From Macrostomum hystrix (lineage: Eukaryota > Animalia > Platyhelminthes), in assembly GCA_950097015.1 (NCBI GenBank), contig CATNEN010000011.1, forward strand, positions 2,108,001-2,172,000: DNA of 64,000 bases, read 5' to 3'. Shown here one piece after another: positions 277-26,016 of the stretch. The notes under the pieces are model-generated. The model searched no databases. It was given only the letters and a program-made list of their open reading frames with translations, and had not been told where the DNA came from. Position numbers and translations under genes: made by a program. Each line of letters begins with the position of its first letter. Position 1 is the first letter of the stretch.

Positions 277-3200
277 TTAGTCAACTTGAAGCTGCAACCT
301 GTCGGGCCGATTTCGGATCCGCTCGGGGTAGCGCCTCACCGAGCTGCCCGGTGGCTCAGCAGCCGCTGACGTTGGCACTGAAGCCGAGTCCGGAGCATTC
401 GAAGTCCCGCTAGCCGCATTCGATACCACTGGCGCCCGGTCTGTTCCAGGCTCGACCTCAGGTTGCACTGACACGATCGATGGTGCAGCTGCACGAGCTG
501 AGCACCGCGGACTAGAGTCGATGGTGGCAGACGGCATGGTCGGCTCGGACAGCATCTGGTCGATGTGGCGTCGTACGATGCCGTCGCCGACCTGGACGTC
601 ATAGTTGCGCTGGGCCGCAGAAACCGCGGTACCGGACACCCAGCCGGCGTCCTTGCCGAAGCCCTTGACTCGAACGATGTCGCCGACCTCGAAGGGTCGG
701 GAAGACCGCCCTGACTGCGCCGCGGCGTCCTGCCGATCTCGAACCCGGTCCACCACTGACGGCCGCAGGAGGTCCAACCTGGAGCGCAGCCGGCGCCCGA
801 ATAGCAGCTCGCTGGGAGACACGCCGGTTGTTGAATGCGGCGTGATTCGGTATGCGAACAGGAAGTTTTGCAGCGCCGCGGCAGAGTGACCGGACTTTCT
901 GATGTGCAGCTTCAGCGTCTGGACGAACCGCTCGGCTTGGCCGTTGGTTGCCGGATGGTATGGCGCCGATGTTATGTGTCGAATGCCGTTGCGGCTGGCG
1001 AATTCAGAGAACTCCTTTGACGAGAACTGTGGACCGTTATCGGAGACTAGTATGCGAGGTAGACCCAGGTGGCTGAAGACGTCTCGCAGATGAGCGATGG
1101 TGCTGCCGGCCGAAGTGTCAGTCATCTATCGAACCTCTGGCCACTTGCTGTGCGCATCGATGATAATCAGATAGACTCGCCCGTCGACAGGGCCGGCGAA
1201 ATCGACGTGAACACGGCTCCAAGGCTCGCTGGGAAATAGCCACGGGTGCGTTGGAGCCTTGATCGGATCAGCCTGATGAGCTTTGCAGGTTTCGCATGTT
1301 CGTGCCAGCTGCTCCAGCTCCTTGTCGAGCCCCGGCCACCAGACGAAGCTGCGTGCCAGGGCCTTCATTCGATTAGCACCTGTGTGCGACAGGTGCAACT
1401 CGCGTAAAACAGACTCACGCAGCGCTTCAGGGATGACCACTCGAGCTCCCCAGAGCAGACAGCCGACTTCGATCGTCAACTCGTGCTGTCGCTGAGCGAA
1501 GTCTGGGAACTCGGTGCCTTGCAGCTTCTCGCCGGACAGCAGAGCTCGCAGCAGCCTGGACATTGTAGGGTCCGCCTGAGTTGCTTTGGCGATCGCAGCA
1601 GCCGTCAGTGCGGCGTTGGAGTCCTCCACTAGCAGGAGCGAATGCACTGCCTCCTCCTCGTTGAAGGTTCCGCGCAGAGGCAAACGAGACAGGGAGTCGC
1701 AGTTCGAATGCTTCTCTGTAGGTCTGAACTCCATCGAGTACTGGTAGCCAGAGAGCCGAATGGCCCATCGCTGCATTCGGGCGGCCGCCCGGGTCGGAAT
1801 CTCCTTGTCTGGGCCGAGCAGTCCCAGCAGCGGTTGATGATCCGTGATGATTGTGAAATGACGGCCGTATAGGAACTGATGGAATCGATGGACACCATAG
1901 ATGATGGCTAGAGCCTCTTTGTCAAGCTGCGAGTAGTTGCGTTGTGCTGGCGTCAACGACTTGCTCGCGAACGCGACTGCGTGATCTCGGCCGTCCACGC
2001 GATGACTGAGGATGACCCCGATGCCGTAGGCCGATGCGTCGCACTCCAGCCTGATGGGCAGGTCCGGGTCAAAGTGCATCAGGGCCTTGGATTCGAGCAA
2101 CATCTGCTTGGAGGCTTGGAAGGCAGCGTCTTCGGTGGCGCCCCAATTCCAGGTGCTGCCCTTGGACAGCAGGCGGTTGAGGGGTGCGACGACTGAGGCT
2201 AGATTTGGCAGAAACTTGGCGTAATGCGTTAGCATGCCCAGGTAGGAGCGCAATTGAGACACATCGCTCGGAGCCGGCGCCTTTTGAACGGCTTCGACCT
2301 TGCTCTGTAGAGGCCGGAGGCCGTGCTGGTCGATCCTATGTCCCAGGTAGTCGATTGAATCTTGAAAGAATGCGCACTTGGAGACGTTGAGCCGCAGGCC
2401 CGCCTCCTGCAGCTTTCGGAGAACCTGGGTCAGGTTGGCCTTGTGGGCTGTCAGCGAAGCTCCAGTCACCAGGATATCGTCTTGGTATACTTGAACGCCG
2501 TCAAGATGCCCGAGCAGACTGTCGAGGACGCGCTGAAAAATCGCGCTCGCCGAGCTGATGCCAAATGGTAGACGGTTGACCTTGAATAGTCCGCGCTGCG
2601 TGTTGATGACGAGGTACTGCTTGCTGTCATCGGAGATAGGCAGCTGCAGGAATGCCTTCGCTAGGTCTAACTTGCTCCACTTGTGACCGCCACCCAGTCT
2701 GGCGAATAAATCCTCGATCCTCGGCAGCGGGTAGTGCTCCTGTTTGGCAACCTGGTTGAACGTGCACTTGTAGTCGCCGCAGATTCGAACTGAGCCATCC
2801 TTCTTGATCACCGGCACGATGGGTGCGGCCCAATCCGAGGTAGCAATCGGTGTGATGACACCATCCGCCTCCATGCGCTGGAGTTCGCGGTCGACGCTTT
2901 CACGCTGTGCGTATGGTACGGGTCGAGCCTTGTAGAATCGGGGTGCGGCGTTGTCCTGAATATGCAGGCTGACTTCTCCTAGGCGGTACTTGCCCAGGCC
3001 TTCGGCGAATACCTCCGGAAACTGACGAACTAGATCGGCAGCTACGTCATCGGGATTTGCAGCTACCGTGTTCACCGAGGCGGTCAGCCCTGGCCAGTCA
3101 AGCCGGATTGCCGCCATCCAGTCGCGGCCCAGGAGTCGAGCGCTGCCTTCAGAGACCACGAGCAGCGGAAGCGAAGCGGACTGACCGGCATGAACAACGT

Positions 3201-4226
3201 TCACCGTCACTACGCCAACTGGACGGAACTCCTGGTCAGTGTAGGTGCGCAGAGTTGACCTGGACGGGCGCAGCTGTAGGTGAGACAGGTGTGCCTCGTA
3301 GAACGCTTTCGGAACCAAACTGACGGCTGAGCCATGTCGAGTTCGAAGTGAGTCAGCACTTTCTCCACCTGCAGTGGCACCAGGATCGGAGATTTCGAAG
3401 CCGTTGAGAGGTGGTGAATCAGCTCAATTTCGTTATCCGCTTCGGAAGCCTCGGCTTCGTCGAGCAACTTCACAGACTCTGGAGACCGACAGACCTTTTT
3501 GAGATGACCGACTCTGCCACAGCGATGGCATTTCGCGTTGCGAAACTTGCAGGTCTGGCGTGGATGAATGCCGCCGCAGCTATCACAGCTGCCCGCAGTG
3601 GATGATGTAGCTCCAAGCGAGACCTTCTGCTTGTCGACGCGTTGTCTCCAAGCTGGTCCAGTCGAACCCGAAGTTGCGACTCTGTTGGTGGCAGGAGGGC
3701 GCGCCATCTCGCTGGAGTATTTGAGAGCCGACTCGAGGTCAGTGGCCAGCTTGATCATTCCGCTGTACGAATGGTCGGAGCTCTCCAAGAGCTTGGCGCG
3801 GAGGGTGTCGCTCTGCATGCCGAATAGAAACTGATCTCGGAGTCGCTCTTCCAAAGACGCGCCGAATTTGCAGTGGGCTGATGCGGACTTGAGCCCTGCT
3901 AGGAAGTCAGCAAAGGACTCTTCCTCGTGCTGGAGTCGGCGTTGAAACTTGAAACGTGCCACAAGCTCTGAGGGTGCTGGAGAGCAGTGGTTCTGGAGAG
4001 TTTCTTGCAGCACCTCGTAGGATAGGTCCGTCAACTTTTTTGGTTGGCACAGATCTCTAAGCAGCTTGTAGTATTTCTCGCCGATTGCCATGAGGAAAGT
4101 AGCACGTTTGGCTTCGGAAGTCTCGATCTTGTTGCATATGAAGTATTGCTCCATTCTTTCCACGTAGATTTCGAAGTCTGAGTCGTTTGAGAGCTCAGGA
4201 ATCTGACCACATGGCCTCGTCGCCAT
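277..4226 (-). pseudogene. gag-pol polyprotein with a 1-nt deletion in the protease D-T-G codons (about 3334-3335) and an in-frame TAG in integrase (1126-1128)
   Basis: gag frame reads FELD-MAQ. Restoring one base (GAC A[C]T GGC) gives FELDTGSAVSLVPKAFY in the pol frame. WPEVR*MTDTS is in one frame and splits the integrase core. Confidence 0.9.
4215..4225 (-). promoter_or_regulatory. Primer binding site TGGCGACGAGG, probably for tRNA-Ser(GCU)
   Basis: Lies just inside the 5' LTR; complementary to the CCUCGUCGCCA 3' end I recall for animal tRNA-Ser(GCU). Confidence 0.8.
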
Positions 4227-12148: not shown

Positions 12149-13611
<1,463 letters not shown>

Positions 13612-15091: not shown

Positions 15092-18000
15092 TTAAATGGC
15101 ATCGAAATCTTCTAGATCTGTGTCCGTCTCCATTAGGGCCACGAAGGCACTTGCATCGTCCTGAGACATCTGCTGCCGCACCGGCTGCTGCTCAGAGGAC
15201 AAAGATGGTTTCTGCTTCGGCGATTGCTTCGCCCTAGAAGTAGGCGCAGCATCCATCAGAGTGCCTCGGACGTCATCAATCCGGGCCTCACCAACGGGCC
15301 AATTGTCCATCGCCTTTGCTGATGCAGCTTTGTTATTCCGCGCCAGTTCCTCTTGAACAATCTCTCGCACCTTGGCCAGCAGCTCGTCACGCTCGTCCTC
15401 TTCCTTCGGCGAACTGCTGGCCATGAGCTTCTCGCGATTGTTGCGAAGACTAAACGCCTGGTACAGAAGGTACTGCAGTACCAGCTCCTTGTCCAGCTGG
15501 CGCTTGTCGTCGAACGACTTCGTCAGATTTCGTCCACGCGCCTCTCGACGATAATTCTTCCAGGTGCGCCTGAACAGACGTCTGAGGATGTCAAACACGT
15601 TGAATGGCGGCGGCAGGCAGGAGCGAGACTGGAACTCCTCGATCAGTTCGTGACGTTCAAACTGCCACAGCGCCTTGCTGCGAGAGTCGATCTCTTCGAT
15701 GGTTTTACTGAACAACGCGATGATCAGGTTGAGCAGCAGGATCTCTGTGATGATGACGTAGAGTGGCATCACCAGATTCGGCACCAGGTACCTTTTAGTG
15801 TTTTAGAACGGATTTTCGTAAATCGACTCGACAAAAAGAAACAAAAAACAGTCAAAAATGTAACTAAAAAGTGGAGAATAATATCTAGACCAGTCGAGCC
15901 TGACGTACAGCCTGTGGCACAGCCGCAGCTAGCGACTCAGTCTGTGGACTGGGGAGGTCGCTATGCCAACTCAAATTTCTACTCCAGCTGATCAAACTAA
16001 GAAGCCACGGATTAAAAGCCCCTATTGTTTAAAAGTTAAGATTTATTAATGCACCTTAAATATACCATAAAGGCAAGGTACAAATCACCAATTTAACAAC
16101 TGTGTGAACTGAAGCAACGCAGAGTGTCTTACGGGCACGTATTGTTTCAGTGGAGTCTGGAATCGAACCTCCGACCTTCAATTCGCGAATCCGACGCTCT
16201 AATCACTAGGCTACAACCCCTCGTTTTCTCGTTTTCCAATGTACAAACGTACATGAATGTATAAACTTTAATATGTGCAGCAACTTTAATATAAACTATT
16301 TATATTACTTTTGGCTATATGTAAGGTAGCTACTAATAGTAGTCAGTAAGAAATGCAAATATATATATATAAAATTCCGTCAATAGAAGCTAGACAGCAG
16401 TGAGAGGGGGGCATGTTAACTATTACGGGTGGGTTCCAATCGGATAAAACAATCTCGCAAACGCCATTAAAATTATTCGAAAGTGTTTTATCAGTTTATC
16501 AGTGTGTTTATCAGCGCGCGGTTCATGTACATCGCCATTCTCAAACTCACCGGCCATACTGATGTGGGCAGGACTTCCGATTGGTTGTCTTGTTGCTGTA
16601 GATATTATCGCACTCTGAGTCACCCTCAATCAGGTCTAGACTGTACTCTCCCACCATGCTGTAGAAGCATATCCTGAACATGGCCACCAGAACCTCTCTG
16701 GTAGTCATCTTGTCCGAATTCCATGCGTAGTAACCATTGGGAAATAGCAGGCCATGGATGAGAACACCAAATCCCAGGATGAAGATGAACAGGATGAACA
16801 GAAACGGCATCATGTCCTTAATGATCATAGTGGCTATCATTTTCAGCTTGGGTCCGAGCACCTCCAGAACGGTTGAGATGTATAGAAGACGCACCCAGTA
16901 GAGCATACAAGATGTACCTATAAAGAGAGGCAGGAACTGACTAAGTAAACATACATAATAACTATAATAATCATAATAACAATAATTGATTACACTGCCC
17001 CAATTAGGACAGATGTTCAGTCGTCAGCACAGACGCAGCTATGCGCGGCGCATTTGAAGACTACGTACGGCTGTTCAGTCCATGGACTGGGGGGACGCCA
17101 CACCCACCTTCAATTACCCCAGCGGATGCTGGTACCCATTCAACATCTGGGTGAACTGAATCAATGCAGAGTTAAGTGTCTTGCTAAAGGACACAAATTT
17201 TTCCAGTGGAGTTGGGAATCGAACCCCCGACCTTCAAGTCGTGAGTCAGACGCTCTAACCACGGGGCTACAACCCCTTGTAGGCTGTAGTCTAAATACGA
17301 GCGTATAAAGAGAGCACATACAAATATTTATAGCAGATATATAATCAAACAAGACTTACAATTGATTTTACATACTTACCCAGAAATAGTCGAGCATTGT
17401 ACCATAGCGTGTCATCAAAGGCCATCTCCAACGATTTCTCGTCAGTAGCAGCTGTCCTGTCATACCTGGAGATTCGCAATGCAAAGCCAATCACGGCCGA
17501 CAAAAGAGCCAATAGGTCGATGATGTTCCACTTGCTTGAAAAAAAGTCTGATATTGATTCGTGCAAGAGCCGATACTGGACAAACTCAGCCAGCTCCTCG
17601 ATGAGAAATCCGAATATGATAAAGTAAGCAATCACTTCCGGCGCGCTGAGCTCGTACTCAAATTGAAGCAGAACAATGTAGGACAATAGCAAAAGTAAGA
17701 CAATATGAGACATGGCATGGTACCGGAATTTAACAGCCGGTATTTGATAGAACCCGTACAGCAGGCTGAATAGAAGGCGAATATGCTCAAGACTGAAGAA
17801 GGACGGCCCATCGGGTGAGTAGCTGCTCGCCGTCTCTTCGTTCTCAGGCTCCGACTTTGGCCGATAATCGGACACAGCCGAGTTCAGTGACGTCATTGAT
17901 TGGCTCAAGTGTTCCCGCGATCGCCTGACTGGTCGAAGCTCCGAGGATCGGACTCGCCTAGCCATGACGGGCGTGGGGTGGTCCTCCTGACCGACCCGCA

Positions 18001-20424
18001 TGGACTCGGGCAGAAGGAAGTCGCACTTGCGAACGCTAGAAACCCTTGCACCCTCCTGCTGAAACATCTCGGCATTCTCATCCAGCTTGTTGGCTTTCTC
18101 TGTGTACTTATTTTCCAAATGGAGCAGAATGATTGGTATGAGTAGGTTGCATGGTATTAGGCCCAGCCAAATGAGCACCTCGCGAACGTAGGTATTGACG
18201 TACAGAAGGAACCCGAACCAGCTCTTGTTCAGGGCCTCTTGGCCAGCTTGGGTTTGCAGGAACTTTGCCGAACTGTTCCTTGCAGCTAGCTGAATGCAGG
18301 AAATGTCACCGTACGTTGGCAGTCTAAGTAGTAAATATTCAACTGTCGTCTGCTTGTTGAACGAAGTGTCCAGTTGGTGAATATTCATCACTGTCTGCGC
18401 TGCGAACATCTCGCAGGTGCTCGCCAGCTGTTCCATCTCAGCTGCGTCCACGGTCATGTTCGGGATGGTAGTGAAAGCCCGCAGTACGCTGGCACAGTAG
18501 AGACCAAGAGGTACCACATCGAACTTCTCCTGCCGCAATAGAATCTCTGTGAGCTTGTGGCGACCCGTGAATATCGACCACATGACCAGCGTGTCCATGG
18601 GGTGCCGCATATAGTCCCCTTGAGCCTGAAATTCTGCATCGCGGTGGGCGCGCAGCTTGAAGTTTGAGCACTTCTGAGCATAGAAGCGAGTGAAAGCTTC
18701 CCTGTCAAGCTTGTGGTCATTGACGAAGTTGTTGGTCAGATGGCTTACAATGCCATTGTTCCCTCGGTTTGGCGTGTGAACGTACAGCTCGTCGATGTGC
18801 TCCTCAATCTGAGCTCGAATTTCGAACCAAACTAGACCGCAAGTCATGATTCGCTCCAGCATCACGTTATCCTCTCTGAATAGTACGTATCTCACTATGT
18901 TGGAGCTGGTCTTTAATAGGACATCCTTGTTGCCAGGATCTAGCAGTACATGAATTGCTTCTGTCTGCAGCAGTTTCAGTACTACGTCCTTGAACTCTAT
19001 AAGATCTATTTTGTCATCCTTCTCCAGCTTGGAGAGAAGCTCAGCCTCTTCCTGCGTGGACAAGTTGTCATAGCTGATCTGGCACAGCTGATACTCATTG
19101 TCCACAGCATCCAGAAAGTTAAGATATTGCTGGAACTGCGGGTCTTGGAAGAGTTCACTGAATGACTGCGCCTCGCTCTTAGTCATCTCCTGGGTGAAGA
19201 AGTACGCCAGGTCACTCATGAGAACGACACTACCCAGCCCAAGCACCTGATCTATGACGGTCTTCTTACTGTCCGACTGAATGTCAACAAATGCACCATT
19301 GTTGAGTAGCAAGGCGGTGATGTTGCGATTCTGGTTGATCACGGCGATGTGCAGTGCCGTCTTACCCTCGTAGCCCTTCAGGTTGACAACGTCCTGATTG
19401 CAGTTATCTAAGAGTGTCTTCACGTGAACTGCCGAATCCTCAAGACAGGCTCGGTGCAATGGACTGTTGCCTTGTCGGTCACTGACGTCGACGTCAGCCC
19501 GGCAAATTTCTAAAATGTATTGGCGAACTTTTTTATCAACCATGCCAAACTGGTACCTAAAAGCAGGTTCACAATGGGCAGGTGAGACTTACTCAACAGG
19601 CAAGACAGCACGTCGATAGTTGGGAATCCACACGCTCGATGCAGCGGATACTCGCCGCTAGGCAGTGGAATGTTCGGATTGGCGCCAAGGGCCACCAACT
19701 TCCTCATCGCTTGCGTCTGCTGGCTCTCCACGGCATAGTGCAGTGGAACATAGTTTTCGAGGTTCTTTTTGTTAAAATTCACTCCCTTATTGTGCAGGAT
19801 GTCCAGAACATGCAAGTGGCCATCAGCGGCAGCGATATCTGACAATGTCTGGTTGCCTCTCTGACACTCGTACAGGTTTTTTTCCGTTAGCATGGACTCG
19901 AGTTTATCCAGGTCCCCATCGTAATAGGCTCGCATAAACGGTGTCACAGGTGTATCATCCTTCCGCTTAACTGATGGCGACAAGCTCGGGGTGATGACGA
20001 GATTCCGGAAAAAGCCCGGAGGCCGTATGTTGCGAACGTCTCGCAGCGGTCTGGAGTTGCGACGCTTCTGGAGAGCCGACATGTCACGACCCGTGTCCAC
20101 CGACTCGCCAGTGTTGGACGAGGCTGAGGCGAACCTCTGCCTGCGCTGCGGCTGCTGCTGCTGCTCCTGGGGCTTTGGCTGAGTCTTCTCCTGCTGACGC
20201 TTGAGGCCGGAGACATCGTCGGTGTCCTCGACGCGAATGGAAATTCCAGCGCCTGGAGAGACCGGCTTTCCACTGTCCATAACTGCTTGAGGCGTCAATA
20301 AGTTCTGCTGCTGCTGCTGCTGCACCACTGAGTACTGCCTGGGCAGCAAAGGTCGATGGCGCAGGCTAAATTGACGGGCGCCGTTTTCGCTTCGCGCCGC
20401 TTTGGCACCAGCAGGGCGCGGCAT
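15092..20424 (-). CDS. TRP cation channel with N-terminal ankyrin repeats and TRPM-like MHR3/4, S1-S6 and TRP box, about 1342 aa. Exons 20424-19593, 19509-17380, 16917-16551, 15791-15092
   Basis: Ankyrin motifs (YVPLHYA, EYPLHRA, NSPLHRA, KTALHIA); TRPM-like HPMDTLVMWSIF, CIQLAA, LGPKLKMI, LLLNLIIALFS and WQFERHELIEEF...LPPPF. Splicing the 83-nt intron 19510-19592 restores a 34-aa ankyrin repeat. Exons total 4029 nt and keep frame. Confidence 0.92.
16095..16221 (-). mobile_element. SINE family A, degenerate 5' part
   Basis: tRNA-like head with B box GGTTCGATTCC; similar to the 16975-17276 and 41559-41870 copies. Confidence 0.7.
16975..17276 (-). mobile_element. SINE family A (tRNA head, CORE-like middle, 3' stem-loop, ATT tail)
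   Basis: A/B boxes, GTGTCCTTTAGCAAGACACTTAAC central motif, near-identical copies elsewhere in the window. Confidence 0.85.
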
Positions 20425-21419
20425 TCCTCAAACAGTTGCGTTTATATAGTCGCAGAACACAAAGCGGATCGGAATAGGTCGGCAGAAAGGGATTTAGTCC
20501 TCAGGCTACATTCATCAGGACTGGGCTATATTTCTTCTGGTGGTCTTTCTTCTTCACTTTTTCTACGGTCGGTGACAGGCTCGGTCCGACCTGGGCGCTT
20601 GAAATCCGAGAGTGAGAGAGAGAATGGAAGTTCGGGAGGCTGGGCAAGATGAGGAATGACTTGATGACCAGGTAGGACAGCTGCTGGTTTTTCTGTTGCA
20701 CCAACTGTGGCAGTTGCGCCAAGCACCAGGTACGCCAGTTCAGGCACCAAGTAACAAATTTAATCGCGCAAAAGATTCTCGGTTTAAAAATGAGTCCGCG
20801 AATGTTAATTAAACAGACGCCAACGATTTCAAGCGTTCCTTTATTCATAGCATTGGTCGTGGTGCATTTTCGTCGATCTCCTGCCGTATTCTGCTCGATC
20901 GATAGTACACGACCTGTACGCATCTTCTGGAAGCTGGAACTGTACGCCAGAATCTGGGAGCTGGGACGATGCTAAAGTTTAGCTAGACATTCTTTCTGTT
21001 TCTACGTCCAAACGACAGACAAAGCGGAGAGGAGGAAGGAAGTAGATAGGATGAGGGACGAGCCGGAAGGTCGCAGGATTTGGCTATTGGATCGCAACAC
21101 TAATTGCAGACCTTTGCAGTTGGAATGAGGAAATACCTCTAGGAGGCATTGAAATCAGACTTTCAGTTGGATAGACAGAATGGCCCGGACTTTAAAGAAA
21201 ACCAGATGTATGGTCCGGTTAGGTACCTCCCCACTGCAAAAGAAACCCGTGCCTATTTTGATAAAAGTACAAAGTCAAAGCCAGACAGTGCAGCCCAGGT
21301 TCGTCAAGTTCAGGTCGGTGGGGGTATGGTCCGTTATTTTCGTTAGAAGGCTCGCAAAAATACGCTATTGCAAAAATACACAAGAGTTTATTGTTCCATC
21401 TGAAGGATGGAGACTGTTA

Positions 21420-21845
<426 letters not shown>

Positions 21846-22079: not shown

Positions 22080-24922
22080 AGGAGGCCGTGGAGACAGCAG
22101 AGACTGGGTGAGGGAGACAGTGGAGACTGGGTGAGGGAGACAGCAGAGACAGGGTGAGGGAGACAGAAGAGACTGAGTGAGAGAGACAGCAGAGACTGGG
22201 TGAGGGAGACAGCAGAGACTGGGTGAGGGAGACAGCAGAGACTGGGTGGGGGAGACAGCAGAGACTGGGTGAGGGAGACAGTGGAGACTGAGTGGGGGAG
22301 ACAGTGGAGACTGGGTGGGGGAGACAGCAAAGACTGGGTGAGGGAGACAGCAGAGACTGGGTGGGGGAGACAGCAGAGACTAGGTGAGGGAGACAGCAGA
22401 GACTGGGTGGGGGAGACAGCAGAGATTGGGTGAGGGAGACAGCAGAGATTGGGTGAGGGAGACAGCAGAGACTGGGTGGGGGAGACAGCAGAGACTGGGT
22501 GGGGGAGACAGCAGAGACTGGGTGAGGGAGACAGTGGAGACTGAGTGGGGGAGACAGCAGAGACTGGGTGAGGGAGACAGCAGAGACTGGGTGAGGGAGA
22601 CAGCAGAGACTGGGTGAGGGAGACAGTGGAGACTGGGTGGGGGAGACAGCAGAGACTGGGTGAGGGAGACAGCAGAGACTGGGTGAGAGAGACAGCAGAG
22701 ACTGGGTGAGGGAGACAGCAGAGACTGGGTGGGGGAGACAGCAGAGACTGGGTGAGGGAGACAGCAGAGACTGGGTGAGGGAGACAGCAGAGACTGGGTG
22801 AGGGAGACAGAAGAGACTGGGTGAGGGAGACAGTGGAGATTGGGTGAGGGAGACAGCAGAGACTGGGTGAGGGAGACAGTGGAGACTGGGTGAGGGAGAC
22901 AGCAGAGACTGGGTGAGGGAGACAGCAGAGACTGGGTGAGGGAGACAGCAGAGACTGGGTGAGGGAGACAGCAGAGACTGGGTGAGGGAGACAGCAGAGA
23001 TTGGGTGAGGGAGACAGTGGAGACTGGGTGAGGGAGACAGCAGAGATTGGGTGAGGGAGACAGCAGAGACTGGGTGAGGGAGGCAGCAGAGACTGGGTGA
23101 GGGAGACAGCAGAGACTGGGTGAGGGAGACAGCAGAGACTGGGTGGGGGAGACAGCAGAGACTGGGTGAGGGAGACAGTGGAGACTGAGTGGGGGAGACA
23201 GTGGAGACTGGGTGGGGGAGACAGCAGAGACTGGGTGAGGGAGACAGCAGAGACTGGGTGGGGGAGACAGCAGAGACTAGGTGAGGGAGACAGCAGAGAC
23301 TGGGTGGGGGAGACAGCAGAGATTGGGTGAGGGAGACAGCAGAGATTGGGTGAGGGAGACAGCAGAGACTGGGTGGGGGAGACAGCAGAGACTGGGTGGG
23401 GGAGACAGCAGAGACTGGGTGAGGGAGACAGTGGAGACTGAGTGGGGGAGACAGCAGAGACTGGGTGAGGGAGACAGCAGAGACTGGGTGAGGGAGACAG
23501 CAGAGACTGGGTGAGGGAGACAGTGGAGACTGGGTGGGGGAGACAGCAGAGACTGGGTGAGGGAGACAGCAGAGACTGGGTGAGAGAGACAGCAGAGACT
23601 GGGTGAGGGAGACAGCAGAGACTGGGTGGGGGAGACAGCAGAGACTGGGTGAGGGAGACAGCAGAGACTGGGTGAGGGAGACAGCAGAGACTGGGTGAGG
23701 GAGACAGAAGAGACTGGGTGAGGGAGACAGTGGAGATTGGGTGAGGGAGACAGCAGAGACTGGGTGAGGGAGACAGTGGAGACTGGGTGAGGGAGACAGC
23801 AGAGACTGGGTGAGGGAGACAGCAGAGACTGGGTGAGGGAGACAGCAGAGACTGGGTGAGGGAGACAGCAGAGACTGGGTGAGGGAGACAGCAGAGATTG
23901 GGTGAGGGAGACAGTGGAGACTGGGTGAGGGAGACAGCAGAGATTGGGTGAGGGAGACAGCAGAGACTGGGTGAGGGAGGCAGCAGAGACTGGGTGAGGG
24001 AGACAGCAGAGACTGGGTGAGGGAGACAGCAGAGACTGGGTGGGGGAGACAGCAGAGACTGGGTGAGGGAGACAGTGGAGACTGAGTGGGGGAGACAGTG
24101 GAGACTGGGTGGGGGAGACAGCAGAGACTGGGTGAGGGAGACAGCAGAGACTGGGTGGGGGAGACAGCAGAGACTAGGTGAGGGAGACAGCAGAGACTGG
24201 GTGGGGGAGACAGCAGAGATTGGGTGAGGGAGACAGCAGAGATTGGGTGAGGGAGACAGCAGAGACTGGGTGGGGGAGACAGCAGAGACTGGGTGGGGGA
24301 GACAGCAGAGACTGGGTGAGGGAGACAGTGGAGACTGAGTGGGGGAGACAGCAGAGACTGGGTGAGGGAGACAGCAGAGACTGGGTGAGGGAGACAGCAG
24401 AGACTGGGTGAGGGAGACAGTGGAGACTGGGTGGGGGAGACAGCAGAGACTGGGTGAGGGAGACAGCAGAGACTGGGTGAGGGAGACAGCAGAGACTGGG
24501 TGGGGGAGACAGCAGAGACTGGGTGAGGGAGACAGCAGAGACTGGGTGGGGGAGACAGCAGAGACTGGGTGAGGGAGACAGTGGAGACTGGGTGAGGGAG
24601 ACAGCAGAGACTGGGTGAGGGAGACAGAAGAGACTGGGTGAGGGAGACAGTGGAGATTGGGTGAGGGAGACAGCAGAGACTGGGTGAGGGAGACAATGGA
24701 GACTGGGTGAGGGAGACAGCAGAGACTGGGTGAGGGAGACAGCAGAGACTGGGTGAGGGAGACAGCAGAGACTGGGTGAGGGAGACAGTGGAGACTGGGT
24801 GAGGGAGACAGCAGAGACTGGGTGAGGGAGACAGCAGAGATTGGGTGAGGGAGACAGTGGAGACTGGGTGGGGGAGACAGCAGAGATTGGGTGAGGGAGA
24901 CAGTGGAGACTGGGTGAGGGAG
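22080..24922. repeat. 23-bp GGGAGACAGCAGAGACTGGGTGA array with an 897-bp (39-monomer) higher-order repeat
   Basis: Identical variant blocks and identical 77-aa ORFs at 22384, 23281 and 24178. Confidence 0.96.
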
Positions 24923-26016
24923 ATCGCGTATTTCATGATGCAGAGAAGGCAGAAACCTTAATTTAGCAGTCCTCTGATACGGGTATGCATCAGTATAAAA
25001 TCCATATGGAGATGGCTGTAAGCAGATGAGGTGCATGGTTAATTAATTAATCCACAGTTCTTTTCAACCATCAGGTTTATTATCCAGAAAATGTATATTA
25101 CACACTGCACGCACGTACTCTTCGGTAAAGCTCCAAAGAACTATGTAGAGGTCGGGTGCAAAAGAGAAGCCATTTATTTTTCAATGCCAGTTAGCTCTGG
25201 TCAGTTCTGCCGAACTAAAAATCAGATTGTACTTTACAACTCGCTCGCTCCCTATCTGAAAGCACAAAAATACTTTATTTCACAACTGATGTGAGTTTAG
25301 CACTAGAAAACTTTGAGCAGCAAGCGAACTCAAGTTCAATAAAGTGGTTAGAGATTAGAGTTTGCATTTGTTTGGCTTGAAGAAACACACAGACGCCTAA
25401 AATAGTCACTTAACATTTGAGCAGGAAAACTTTTGTCAGGTGTGCGGGGTCGTTCGCCCGATTCTCTTCATAAAATGACCGATTCTGAGCAGGGCAGGGC
25501 TTTGTTAAAAACGCCATCTGAATGTGCAGCGTGTTATTGCATGAGTGCGTGCGCATACAATTGACTCAACAATTCTATGCTCATTGGCTCAGTGTTATAA
25601 TAATACTTGCCTTGTGCACAATGCGACTCTGGGCCGAGTTGCGTTGCCAAAACATTGCACCGGGGCTGGGGGTAGGTGTTTTGAGCGCATTCTAAAACAC
25701 CCCCCCTGTCTGTGACCCAGTATTGATTCTGCTGTGTGACACAGGCCTGAGCTCATTGGCTGGGCTAGCTGAGCACAACTGCTCAGGAATCTCAAATCTC
25801 AATCTCAACAACTACAAAGCGTGCAGCGAGCGGGCGAGAGACGTTGTGCGAGGGAGAATTAGTTGTGAAGGCGTTATTTTTACAAGCGAAACGGACATTG
25901 GCTAGGCGCCTTGACTAACAGTGATCAACAACGCTTTTGAGAAGACTGGCGCTTATTTGGGATTGCTTGCTGTAGGGAAAATCAACTCAGATCGGACAGG
26001 AATTTAACGCTTCAAT

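Follow-up and report, generated by a model that had tools for sequence, protein, structure and literature searches.

Does an array of ankyrin repeats joined to a TRPM-type channel body make a new kind of transient receptor potential (TRP) channel? The question is raised by a gene on the minus strand, at 20424-15092, of a 64,000-nucleotide (nt) stretch of the Macrostomum hystrix genome (contig CATNEN010000011.1, positions 2,108,001 to 2,172,000; hereafter the window). An earlier study detected ankyrin repeats in neither TRPM nor TRPS channels and suggested that their ancestor had also lacked them (Himmel et al. 2020, PMC7306681), and the initial annotation of the window took the gene for a possible new TRP subtype. 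That suggestion has to be given up, because the architecture is already published as TRPM_MCLZ or 'TRPM-like' and the window gene falls in that clade. We hold with high confidence that this is an intact Macrostomum gene for a subunit of a TRPM-derived cation channel, carrying ankyrin repeats in place of SLOG and belonging to the flatworm 'TRPM-like' clade. It is a newly recognized co-orthologue of TRPM_MCLZ from a free-living worm, within a lineage-specific expansion, and not a new TRP family.

Structure of the gene and of the predicted channel

Searches, folds and trees for the window gene were run with single exons, and its orthologue P0049 and single open reading frame (ORF) paralogues stood in for the full length. 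A Pfam hidden Markov model scan placed ankyrin families (Ank_2, Ank_4, Ank and Ank_3) at residues 164-264 of exon 1 and early in exon 2. In exon 2 the scan returned Ank_2 (E 6.9e-13), PF25508 (a TRPM2-like domain that covers MHR3/4; E 6.6e-11) and Ion_trans. No LSDAT/SLOG (PF18139, PF18171), NUDIX, alpha-kinase or TRP_2 domain was found by Pfam in the exons, and the lack of a NUDT9-H or kinase tail described at first was thereby borne out. When the SLOG model was searched against all six frames of the whole genome, many canonical TRPM loci were detected elsewhere and none in the 64-kb window.

In the AlphaFold2 (AF2) model of exon 1, residues 1-158 had a predicted local distance difference test score (pLDDT) of about 50, and residues 160-277 (pLDDT >90) formed four ankyrin helix pairs. 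The exon-2 model (pLDDT 82.3, from a 49-sequence alignment) contained three more, for a total of seven where six or seven had been estimated. VIA matched residues 1-104 of the exon-2 model to designed ankyrin repeat proteins (Z about 16, root-mean-square deviation (rmsd) 1.5 Å). These seven ankyrin repeats occupy the place of MHR1/2 (SLOG) in the window protein. The replacement had been proposed from the outset, and the rooted trees described below agree with it. Only about 40 residues lie between the final repeat and the start of MHR3. The junction is located within the 2130-nt exon 2, as first noted, and this counts against a chance fusion; the layout is an artefact of neither splicing nor assembly.

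The remainder of the protein is of TRPM type. The motifs YVLFREDNVMLERIMTCGL (exon-2 residues 207-225), HPMDTLVMWSIF (302-313), VKF, LGPKLKMI, WQFER and LPPPF and the pore cysteine pair were all located. In a sequence search of the PDB, TRPM channels were the top non-ankyrin match for every exon. The non-ankyrin part of exon 2 matched TRPM8 residues 545-700 (MHR4) and S1-S3 of TRPM3/7, and exon 3 had N. vectensis TRPM2 as its top match (S4 to pore, E 8.9e-11). Exon 4 matched S6-TRP of TRPM2 (E 1e-14), residues 1022-1143 of TRPM4, and S6-TRP with the post-TRP helices of TRPM2/3/4. The top 50 Foldseek matches to the exon-2 AF2 model were TRPM structures without exception (50/50). Residues 145-709 of this model were aligned by VIA to TRPMs from the start of MHR3 onward (Z 15-19), best to nvTRPM2 434-950 (Z 18.7, rmsd 3.4 Å, 368 residues), and also to hTRPM4 393-895 (Z 17.5) and TRPM7 399-965 (Z 17.0).

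Membership in other TRP families was considered and rejected. Among TRPA, TRPN, TRPC and TRPV, NOMPC matched through its ankyrins only and TRPV3 through S4-S5 only, the latter at E about 3e-5 in the PDB search, as against 1e-9 to 1e-17 for TRPMs. TRPS membership was set aside on the Pfam result, namely ankyrins without SLOG or NUDIX; the tree held no TRPS. Of the features of a canonical TRPM, the window gene has the TRP box WQFER...LPPPF and descent within the TRPM tree, and lacks MHR1/2 (SLOG). The initial annotation had let its proposal hang on two points, which came out differently: MHR3/4 homology is present (PF25508, VIA), and the architecture is that of a family already described (PMC10788528, PMC11731825, PMC12861061).

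Four long ORFs lie on the minus strand at this locus; with the boundaries read from the sequence, they form one intact gene of four exons and three introns. Its coding sequence of 4029 nt specifies 1342 amino acids (aa), all 1342 codons being open; the intron phases are compatible (1, 1 and 2), and all six splice sites are canonical GT-AG. Exon 1 (20424-19593; this and the following positions on the minus strand) starts with the ATG at 20424 and ends at a donor in which TTGA is followed by GTAAGT. Codons 1-158 specify a Q-rich disordered N-terminus and codons 160-277 ankyrin repeats 1-4, the fourth of which is interrupted by intron 1 (19592-19510; 83 nt, GTAAGT...TTTTAG, phase 1). Exon 2 (19509-17380) continues with repeats 4b-7 (about 19184-19509) and a short helical linker. 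The MHR3/MHR4-like region (about 18098-19075), a disordered loop (about 17816-18037), the pre-S1 segment with VKF, and S1 to the start of S4 (17381-17791) complete it. Beyond intron 2 (17379-16918; 462 nt, phase 1), exon 3 (16917-16551) contributes the remainder of S4, the S4-S5 linker LGPKLKMI, S5 and the pore loop FYSMVGEYSLDLIEGDSECD...CPH with its cysteine pair. Intron 3 (16550-15792) has 759 nt (GTGAGT...AAAAG, phase 2). Exon 4 (15791-15092, stop codon included) encodes S6, the TRP helix, with WQFER at about 15656-15670 and LPPPF after it, and a helical, acidic C-terminal tail.

The 83-nt intron 1 is the sole GT-AG pair that joins both reading frames, and its removal restores a regular ankyrin repeat (…DVLSCLL-K-ICRADVDVSDRQGNSPLH). 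Alternatives of 36, 43 and 62 nt were tried and rejected: each kept or created a stop or broke the ankyrin repeat, and the 83-nt intron alone agrees with the frame, the repeat and the orthologue.

That orthologue is Mlig030565g1 of Macrostomum lignano (P0049, 1365 aa), with which the window model is collinear over its entire length and to which the gene is related 1:1. Exon 1 aligned to P0049 residues 1-293 (64% identical, starting Met shared), exon 2 to residues 295-1001 (87%), exon 3 to residues 1003-1123 (94%) and exon 4 to residues 1125-1365 (69%, last residue shared). The alignments were in order and without overlap, and the 3 skipped residues are split codons. Exon junctions agree with P0049 at residue 294 (intron 1) and residue 1124 (intron 3). 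Identity is higher in the core (87%, 94%) than in the disordered tails (64%, 69%), a pattern that argues for purifying selection on the window gene.

Relatives and placement among TRPM channels

An initial word search was dominated by generic ankyrin proteins and yielded one true relative; later queries used non-ankyrin regions. An exhaustive phmmer search of 1.84 billion representatives, with the 615 residues of exon 2 outside the ankyrin repeats as query, gave 249 matches. M. lignano paralogues came first, followed by Opisthorchis, Dicrocoelium and Schistocephalus proteins and by nameless proteins from Logan public-run assemblies (P0072, P0076 and P0242). Two of these, P0076 and P0242, have the ankyrin-TRPM layout; the third, P0072, is related but shorter. 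The top matches were ankyrin-bearing flatworm proteins, nameless proteins of equal layout where scanned, or fragments, and canonical SLOG-TRPMs appeared from E 2e-17 downward. All full-length members of the family that were scanned had Ank and Ion_trans without SLOG, and every named ankyrin-TRPM member among the representatives was a flatworm protein.

The same genome, searched over 42 contigs (220 Mb), contains about 20 loci that match the window gene. Nine further ORFs of the Macrostomum subclade, several of them intronless and full length, all had Ank (9/9) and none had SLOG (0/9); PF25508 was detected in seven of the nine at E <0.001, four of these above Pfam's cut-off. Two family members stand in tandem about 5 kb apart on one contig (C1:2375897-2377714 and C1:2382588-2384492). 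An in-frame TGA falls within the matching stretch of the second, which may be a pseudogene or contain an intron. The loci C16:25227-29931 and C31:2897205-2901915 agree exactly in E-value and match range over several exons of one family member and are probably a recent duplicate or an uncollapsed haplotype.

Trees were built from the region between about 200 residues upstream of MHR4 and the TRP helix, with ankyrin columns upstream of MHR3 excluded. In the first tree (79 rows, 720 columns, LG+G4; support given as ultrafast bootstrap/Shimodaira-Hasegawa-like approximate likelihood ratio test, SH-aLRT), all ankyrin-bearing sequences formed one clade (100/100). Within it the Macrostomum genes grouped together (100/98), as did TRPM_MCLZ with P0072, P0076 and P0242 (100/100) and window exon 2 with P0049 (100/100). 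The ankyrin clade joined a flatworm-only SLOG-TRPM group to the exclusion of all other TRPMs (97/99). A second tree (37 rows, LG+C20+F+G4 with posterior mean site frequencies, PMSF), rooted on the TRPM of the choanoflagellate Salpingoeca, had a topology equal to that of the first, with SH-aLRT 100 for the ankyrin clade and 99 for its union with the flatworm SLOG-TRPMs. The ankyrin clade was nested in the TRPM2-like part, and TRPM1/3/6/7-like sequences branched earlier. It includes P0231 (CAH8438365.1) and P0252 (CAH8481013.1), the accessions used as TRPM_MCLZ in PMC10788528, and P0252 carries H946, Y1038, R1120 and T1121 at the published positions. The window gene lies in a Macrostomum-specific sister subclade. 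P0072, P0076 and P0242 take a position intermediate between Macrostomum and neodermatan TRPM_MCLZ, the one expected of other free-living flatworms, and the branching order within the clade follows flatworm phylogeny. The pairs L019/P0216, L023/P0066 and L009/P0065 show the expansion to be older than the split of the window species from M. lignano.

The position of the ankyrin clade, nested in TRPM beside flatworm SLOG-TRPMs (97/99; 99), indicates that ankyrins replaced SLOG and are not an ancestral relic. A relic would mean that the repeats came from the ancestor of group-1 TRP channels and that this lineage, as a separate ancient family, had diverged before SLOG was acquired by TRPM and TRPS. 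Ordinary TRPMs have in MHR3/4 a set of degenerate ankyrin-like repeats of their own (PMC13143021, citing Burroughs 2015), the stem of the clade is long and fully supported, and the outgroup was a choanoflagellate TRPM and no non-TRPM family, all of which would suit such an origin. We nevertheless regard it as very unlikely, given the nesting within metazoan TRPMs, the restriction of named members to flatworms, and the TRPM-specific pore cysteine pair and WxFxR...LPPP TRP box retained by Macrostomum members.

It is likewise highly improbable that Macrostomum acquired ankyrins on a TRPM body independently of neodermatan TRPM_MCLZ. The channel-body tree, which contains no ankyrin columns, unites both groups (100/100; 100), the array meets MHR3 at the same place in both subclades, SLOG is absent in 32/32 members examined, and branching follows the flatworm phylogeny. 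These results stand against the low identity between the subclades (only about 20%), their unlike TRP boxes and the readiness with which ankyrin repeats are gained. That the gene is a non-functional, degenerating paralogue, or that a TRPM fragment and an ankyrin gene were fused by chance, can scarcely be credited: the gene model comes from sequence and orthology and not from transcripts, two introns hold short interspersed nuclear elements (SINEs), and at least one copy in this large family has an in-frame stop (C1:2382588), but 1342 open codons, six canonical splice sites, start and stop codons that coincide with those of P0049 in M. lignano, an identity that peaks in the functional core (87%, 94%) and is lowest in the disordered tails (64%, 69%), and an ankyrin-MHR junction inside a single exon all speak for an intact gene.

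Several points weigh against reading the gene as an intact member of the 'TRPM-like' clade that encodes a channel subunit. The trees contained no TRPS, TRPC, TRPN, TRPA or TRPV and were rooted on one choanoflagellate TRPM. The stem of the ankyrin clade is long (0.9-1.3 substitutions per site), and long-branch or compositional attraction to other flatworm sequences is possible. The window gene and TRPM_MCLZ are only about 20% identical over exon 2, and their TRP boxes differ (WQFER vs HWLAGRY). Searches and folds were based on separate exons and not on one full-length spliced protein, the introns on sequence and orthology only, and the channel function of Macrostomum members is predicted by homology only.

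Proposed origin and function, and surroundings of the gene

A canonical TRPM2-like SLOG channel would have given rise to the clade through domain replacement, in the stem lineage of flatworms. On balance, we favour a wider scenario: a flatworm-wide ankyrin-TRPM subfamily arose once in the stem, by a SLOG-to-ankyrin swap in a TRPM2-like channel; parasites kept one copy (TRPM_MCLZ), Macrostomum expanded to roughly 20 genes, and the Macrostomum genes, which retain the TRPM pore and TRP box of the ancestor, link canonical TRPM with the drug target as intermediate forms. If this is true, a transgenic-capable free-living worm could be used as a model to study how an anthelmintic target is gated and what its native role is, and the published view of the TRPM and TRPS lineages as ankyrin-free needs qualifying.

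The window channel is presumably tetrameric. From the experiments on Sm.TRPM_MCLZ, it may be expected to act as a non-selective cation channel gated via the S1-S4/TRP-helix cavity. This cavity, the meclonazepam site in TRPM_MCLZ, is present in the window protein. The motifs EExxE in S2 and WNxxD in S3 and a TRP-helix Glu are a putative conservative match to the TRPM Ca2+ site of TRPM4 and TRPM2 structures. Because SLOG and NUDT9-H are absent, the ADP-ribose/nucleotide sites of TRPM2-like channels would be unusable, and sensing of these ligands via SLOG or NUDT9-H would be impossible. The ankyrin arm would most likely serve in protein or cytoskeleton interaction, or in regulation.

The S4 pocket position equivalent to Sm H946 is Tyr in the window protein, and the His associated with high sensitivity is thus missing. 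Tyr at this position is found in the low-sensitivity orthologues of S. japonicum and Fasciola (PMC10788528, PMC12861061). Since the window channel shares this residue with meclonazepam-insensitive orthologues, low meclonazepam sensitivity is predicted for it. The S4 His, like meclonazepam activation, is a trait of some orthologues and not a criterion of the clade.

The surroundings of the gene are rich in repeats. Intron 2 contains a tRNA-like SINE of about 215 bp (17060-17290), and a related stretch lies in intron 3 (about 16140-16230). ARAGORN called no tRNA in these intronic elements. A genome search gave >2000 first-look candidates, and the 39 other copies that were scored were 92-95% identical; with copies so numerous and so alike, the element belongs to a young family of very high abundance. 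Just upstream of the TRP gene start, a 9-bp tandem repeat (AGACAGGGG, about 40 copies) occupies 21419-21776. A 23-bp minisatellite (GGAGACAGCAGAGACTGGGTGAG, 123 copies, 92% matches) extends over 22090-24923 and is the source of spurious minus-strand ORFs of about 1000 aa and of a strong GC/AT skew. An apparent tubulin gene without introns lies about 1.5 kb downstream of the 3' end of the TRP gene: a single plus-strand ORF (12361-13611) of 416 aa that has Tubulin and Tubulin_C domains and sits in GC-rich DNA (58%). Further off, at 277-4226 on the minus strand, the pol region of a long terminal repeat (LTR) retrotransposon (reverse transcriptase, RNase H, integrase zinc finger and integrase core) is spread over adjacent ORFs.

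Comparison with TRPM_MCLZ and other TRP channels

TRPM_MCLZ (Schistosoma mansoni Smp_333650, with trematode and cestode orthologues), the schistosome target of meclonazepam, was characterized as a TRPM whose N-terminus bears 'ankyrin-like' repeats (Park et al. 2023, PMC10788528). It was later reported to have ankyrin modules in place of MHR1/2-SLOG (Sprague et al. 2024, PMC11731825), and the name 'TRPM-like' has been proposed for the group (a 2026 paper in the International Journal for Parasitology: Drugs and Drug Resistance, PMC12861061). It is one of two validated schistosome TRPM drug targets. The TRPM_MCLZ papers that we found (PMC10788528, PMC11731825, PMC12861061) cover parasites only and do not mention free-living flatworms, and a search of the available library for meclonazepam, TRPM and planarian together returned no paper. 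The window locus and its relatives indicate that the architecture is older than parasitism, that it came from a SLOG-bearing TRPM and that it was strongly diversified in a free-living flatworm. Macrostomum, culturable and genetically tractable, offers an accessible system and a sequence series that links canonical TRPM to TRPM_MCLZ.

The window gene has the features by which the 'TRPM-like' group is recognized, namely N-terminal ankyrins, no SLOG, a TRPM-type body and grouping with TRPM_MCLZ to the exclusion of SLOG-TRPMs. It shares with TRPM_MCLZ the replacement of MHR1/2-SLOG by ankyrins, the TRPM-type MHR3/4, S1-S6 and TRP helix, the absence of NUDT9-H and kinase domains, the small number of exons and the common 100/100 clade. 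The pore Tyr (Y1038 equivalent) and the TRP-helix Arg (R1120 equivalent) are also conserved. The two differ in that the window gene is co-orthologous and not a 1:1 orthologue. TRPM_MCLZ has HWLAGRY and a shorter pore loop, whereas the window gene keeps the canonical WQFER...LPPPF and the pore-loop cysteine pair, and the S4 pocket holds His946 in the former and Tyr in the latter. TRPM_MCLZ is known from parasites and the window gene from a free-living worm. Copy number differs as well: one TRPM_MCLZ per schistosome has been described (PMC10788528, PMC11731825, PMC12861061), and our searches returned one gene cluster per named parasite, as against about 20 matching Macrostomum loci.

Canonical TRPMs (TRPM2-like, beta clade; including the flatworm SLOG-TRPMs P0084 and P0127) have MHR3, MHR4, pre-S1, S1-S6, the pore cysteine pair, the TRP box and the post-TRP helices in common with the window gene, which differs from them in having seven ankyrins and neither SLOG/MHR1-2 nor NUDT9-H; identity is about 25% or less. 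TRPS (soromelastatin, ced-11-like) is, like the window gene, a TRPM-related lineage outside TRPM1-8. TRPS channels are described as combining SLOG with Nudix domains and as lacking detectable ankyrin repeats (PMC7306681), a domain set opposite to that of the window gene. Finally, TRPA, TRPN/NOMPC, TRPC and TRPV likewise place an N-terminal ankyrin array before a six-transmembrane TRP channel. The window gene is unlike them in that its transmembrane region, its TRP box and the cytosolic shell between ankyrins and S1 are of TRPM type, and the TRP_2 domain of TRPC is absent.

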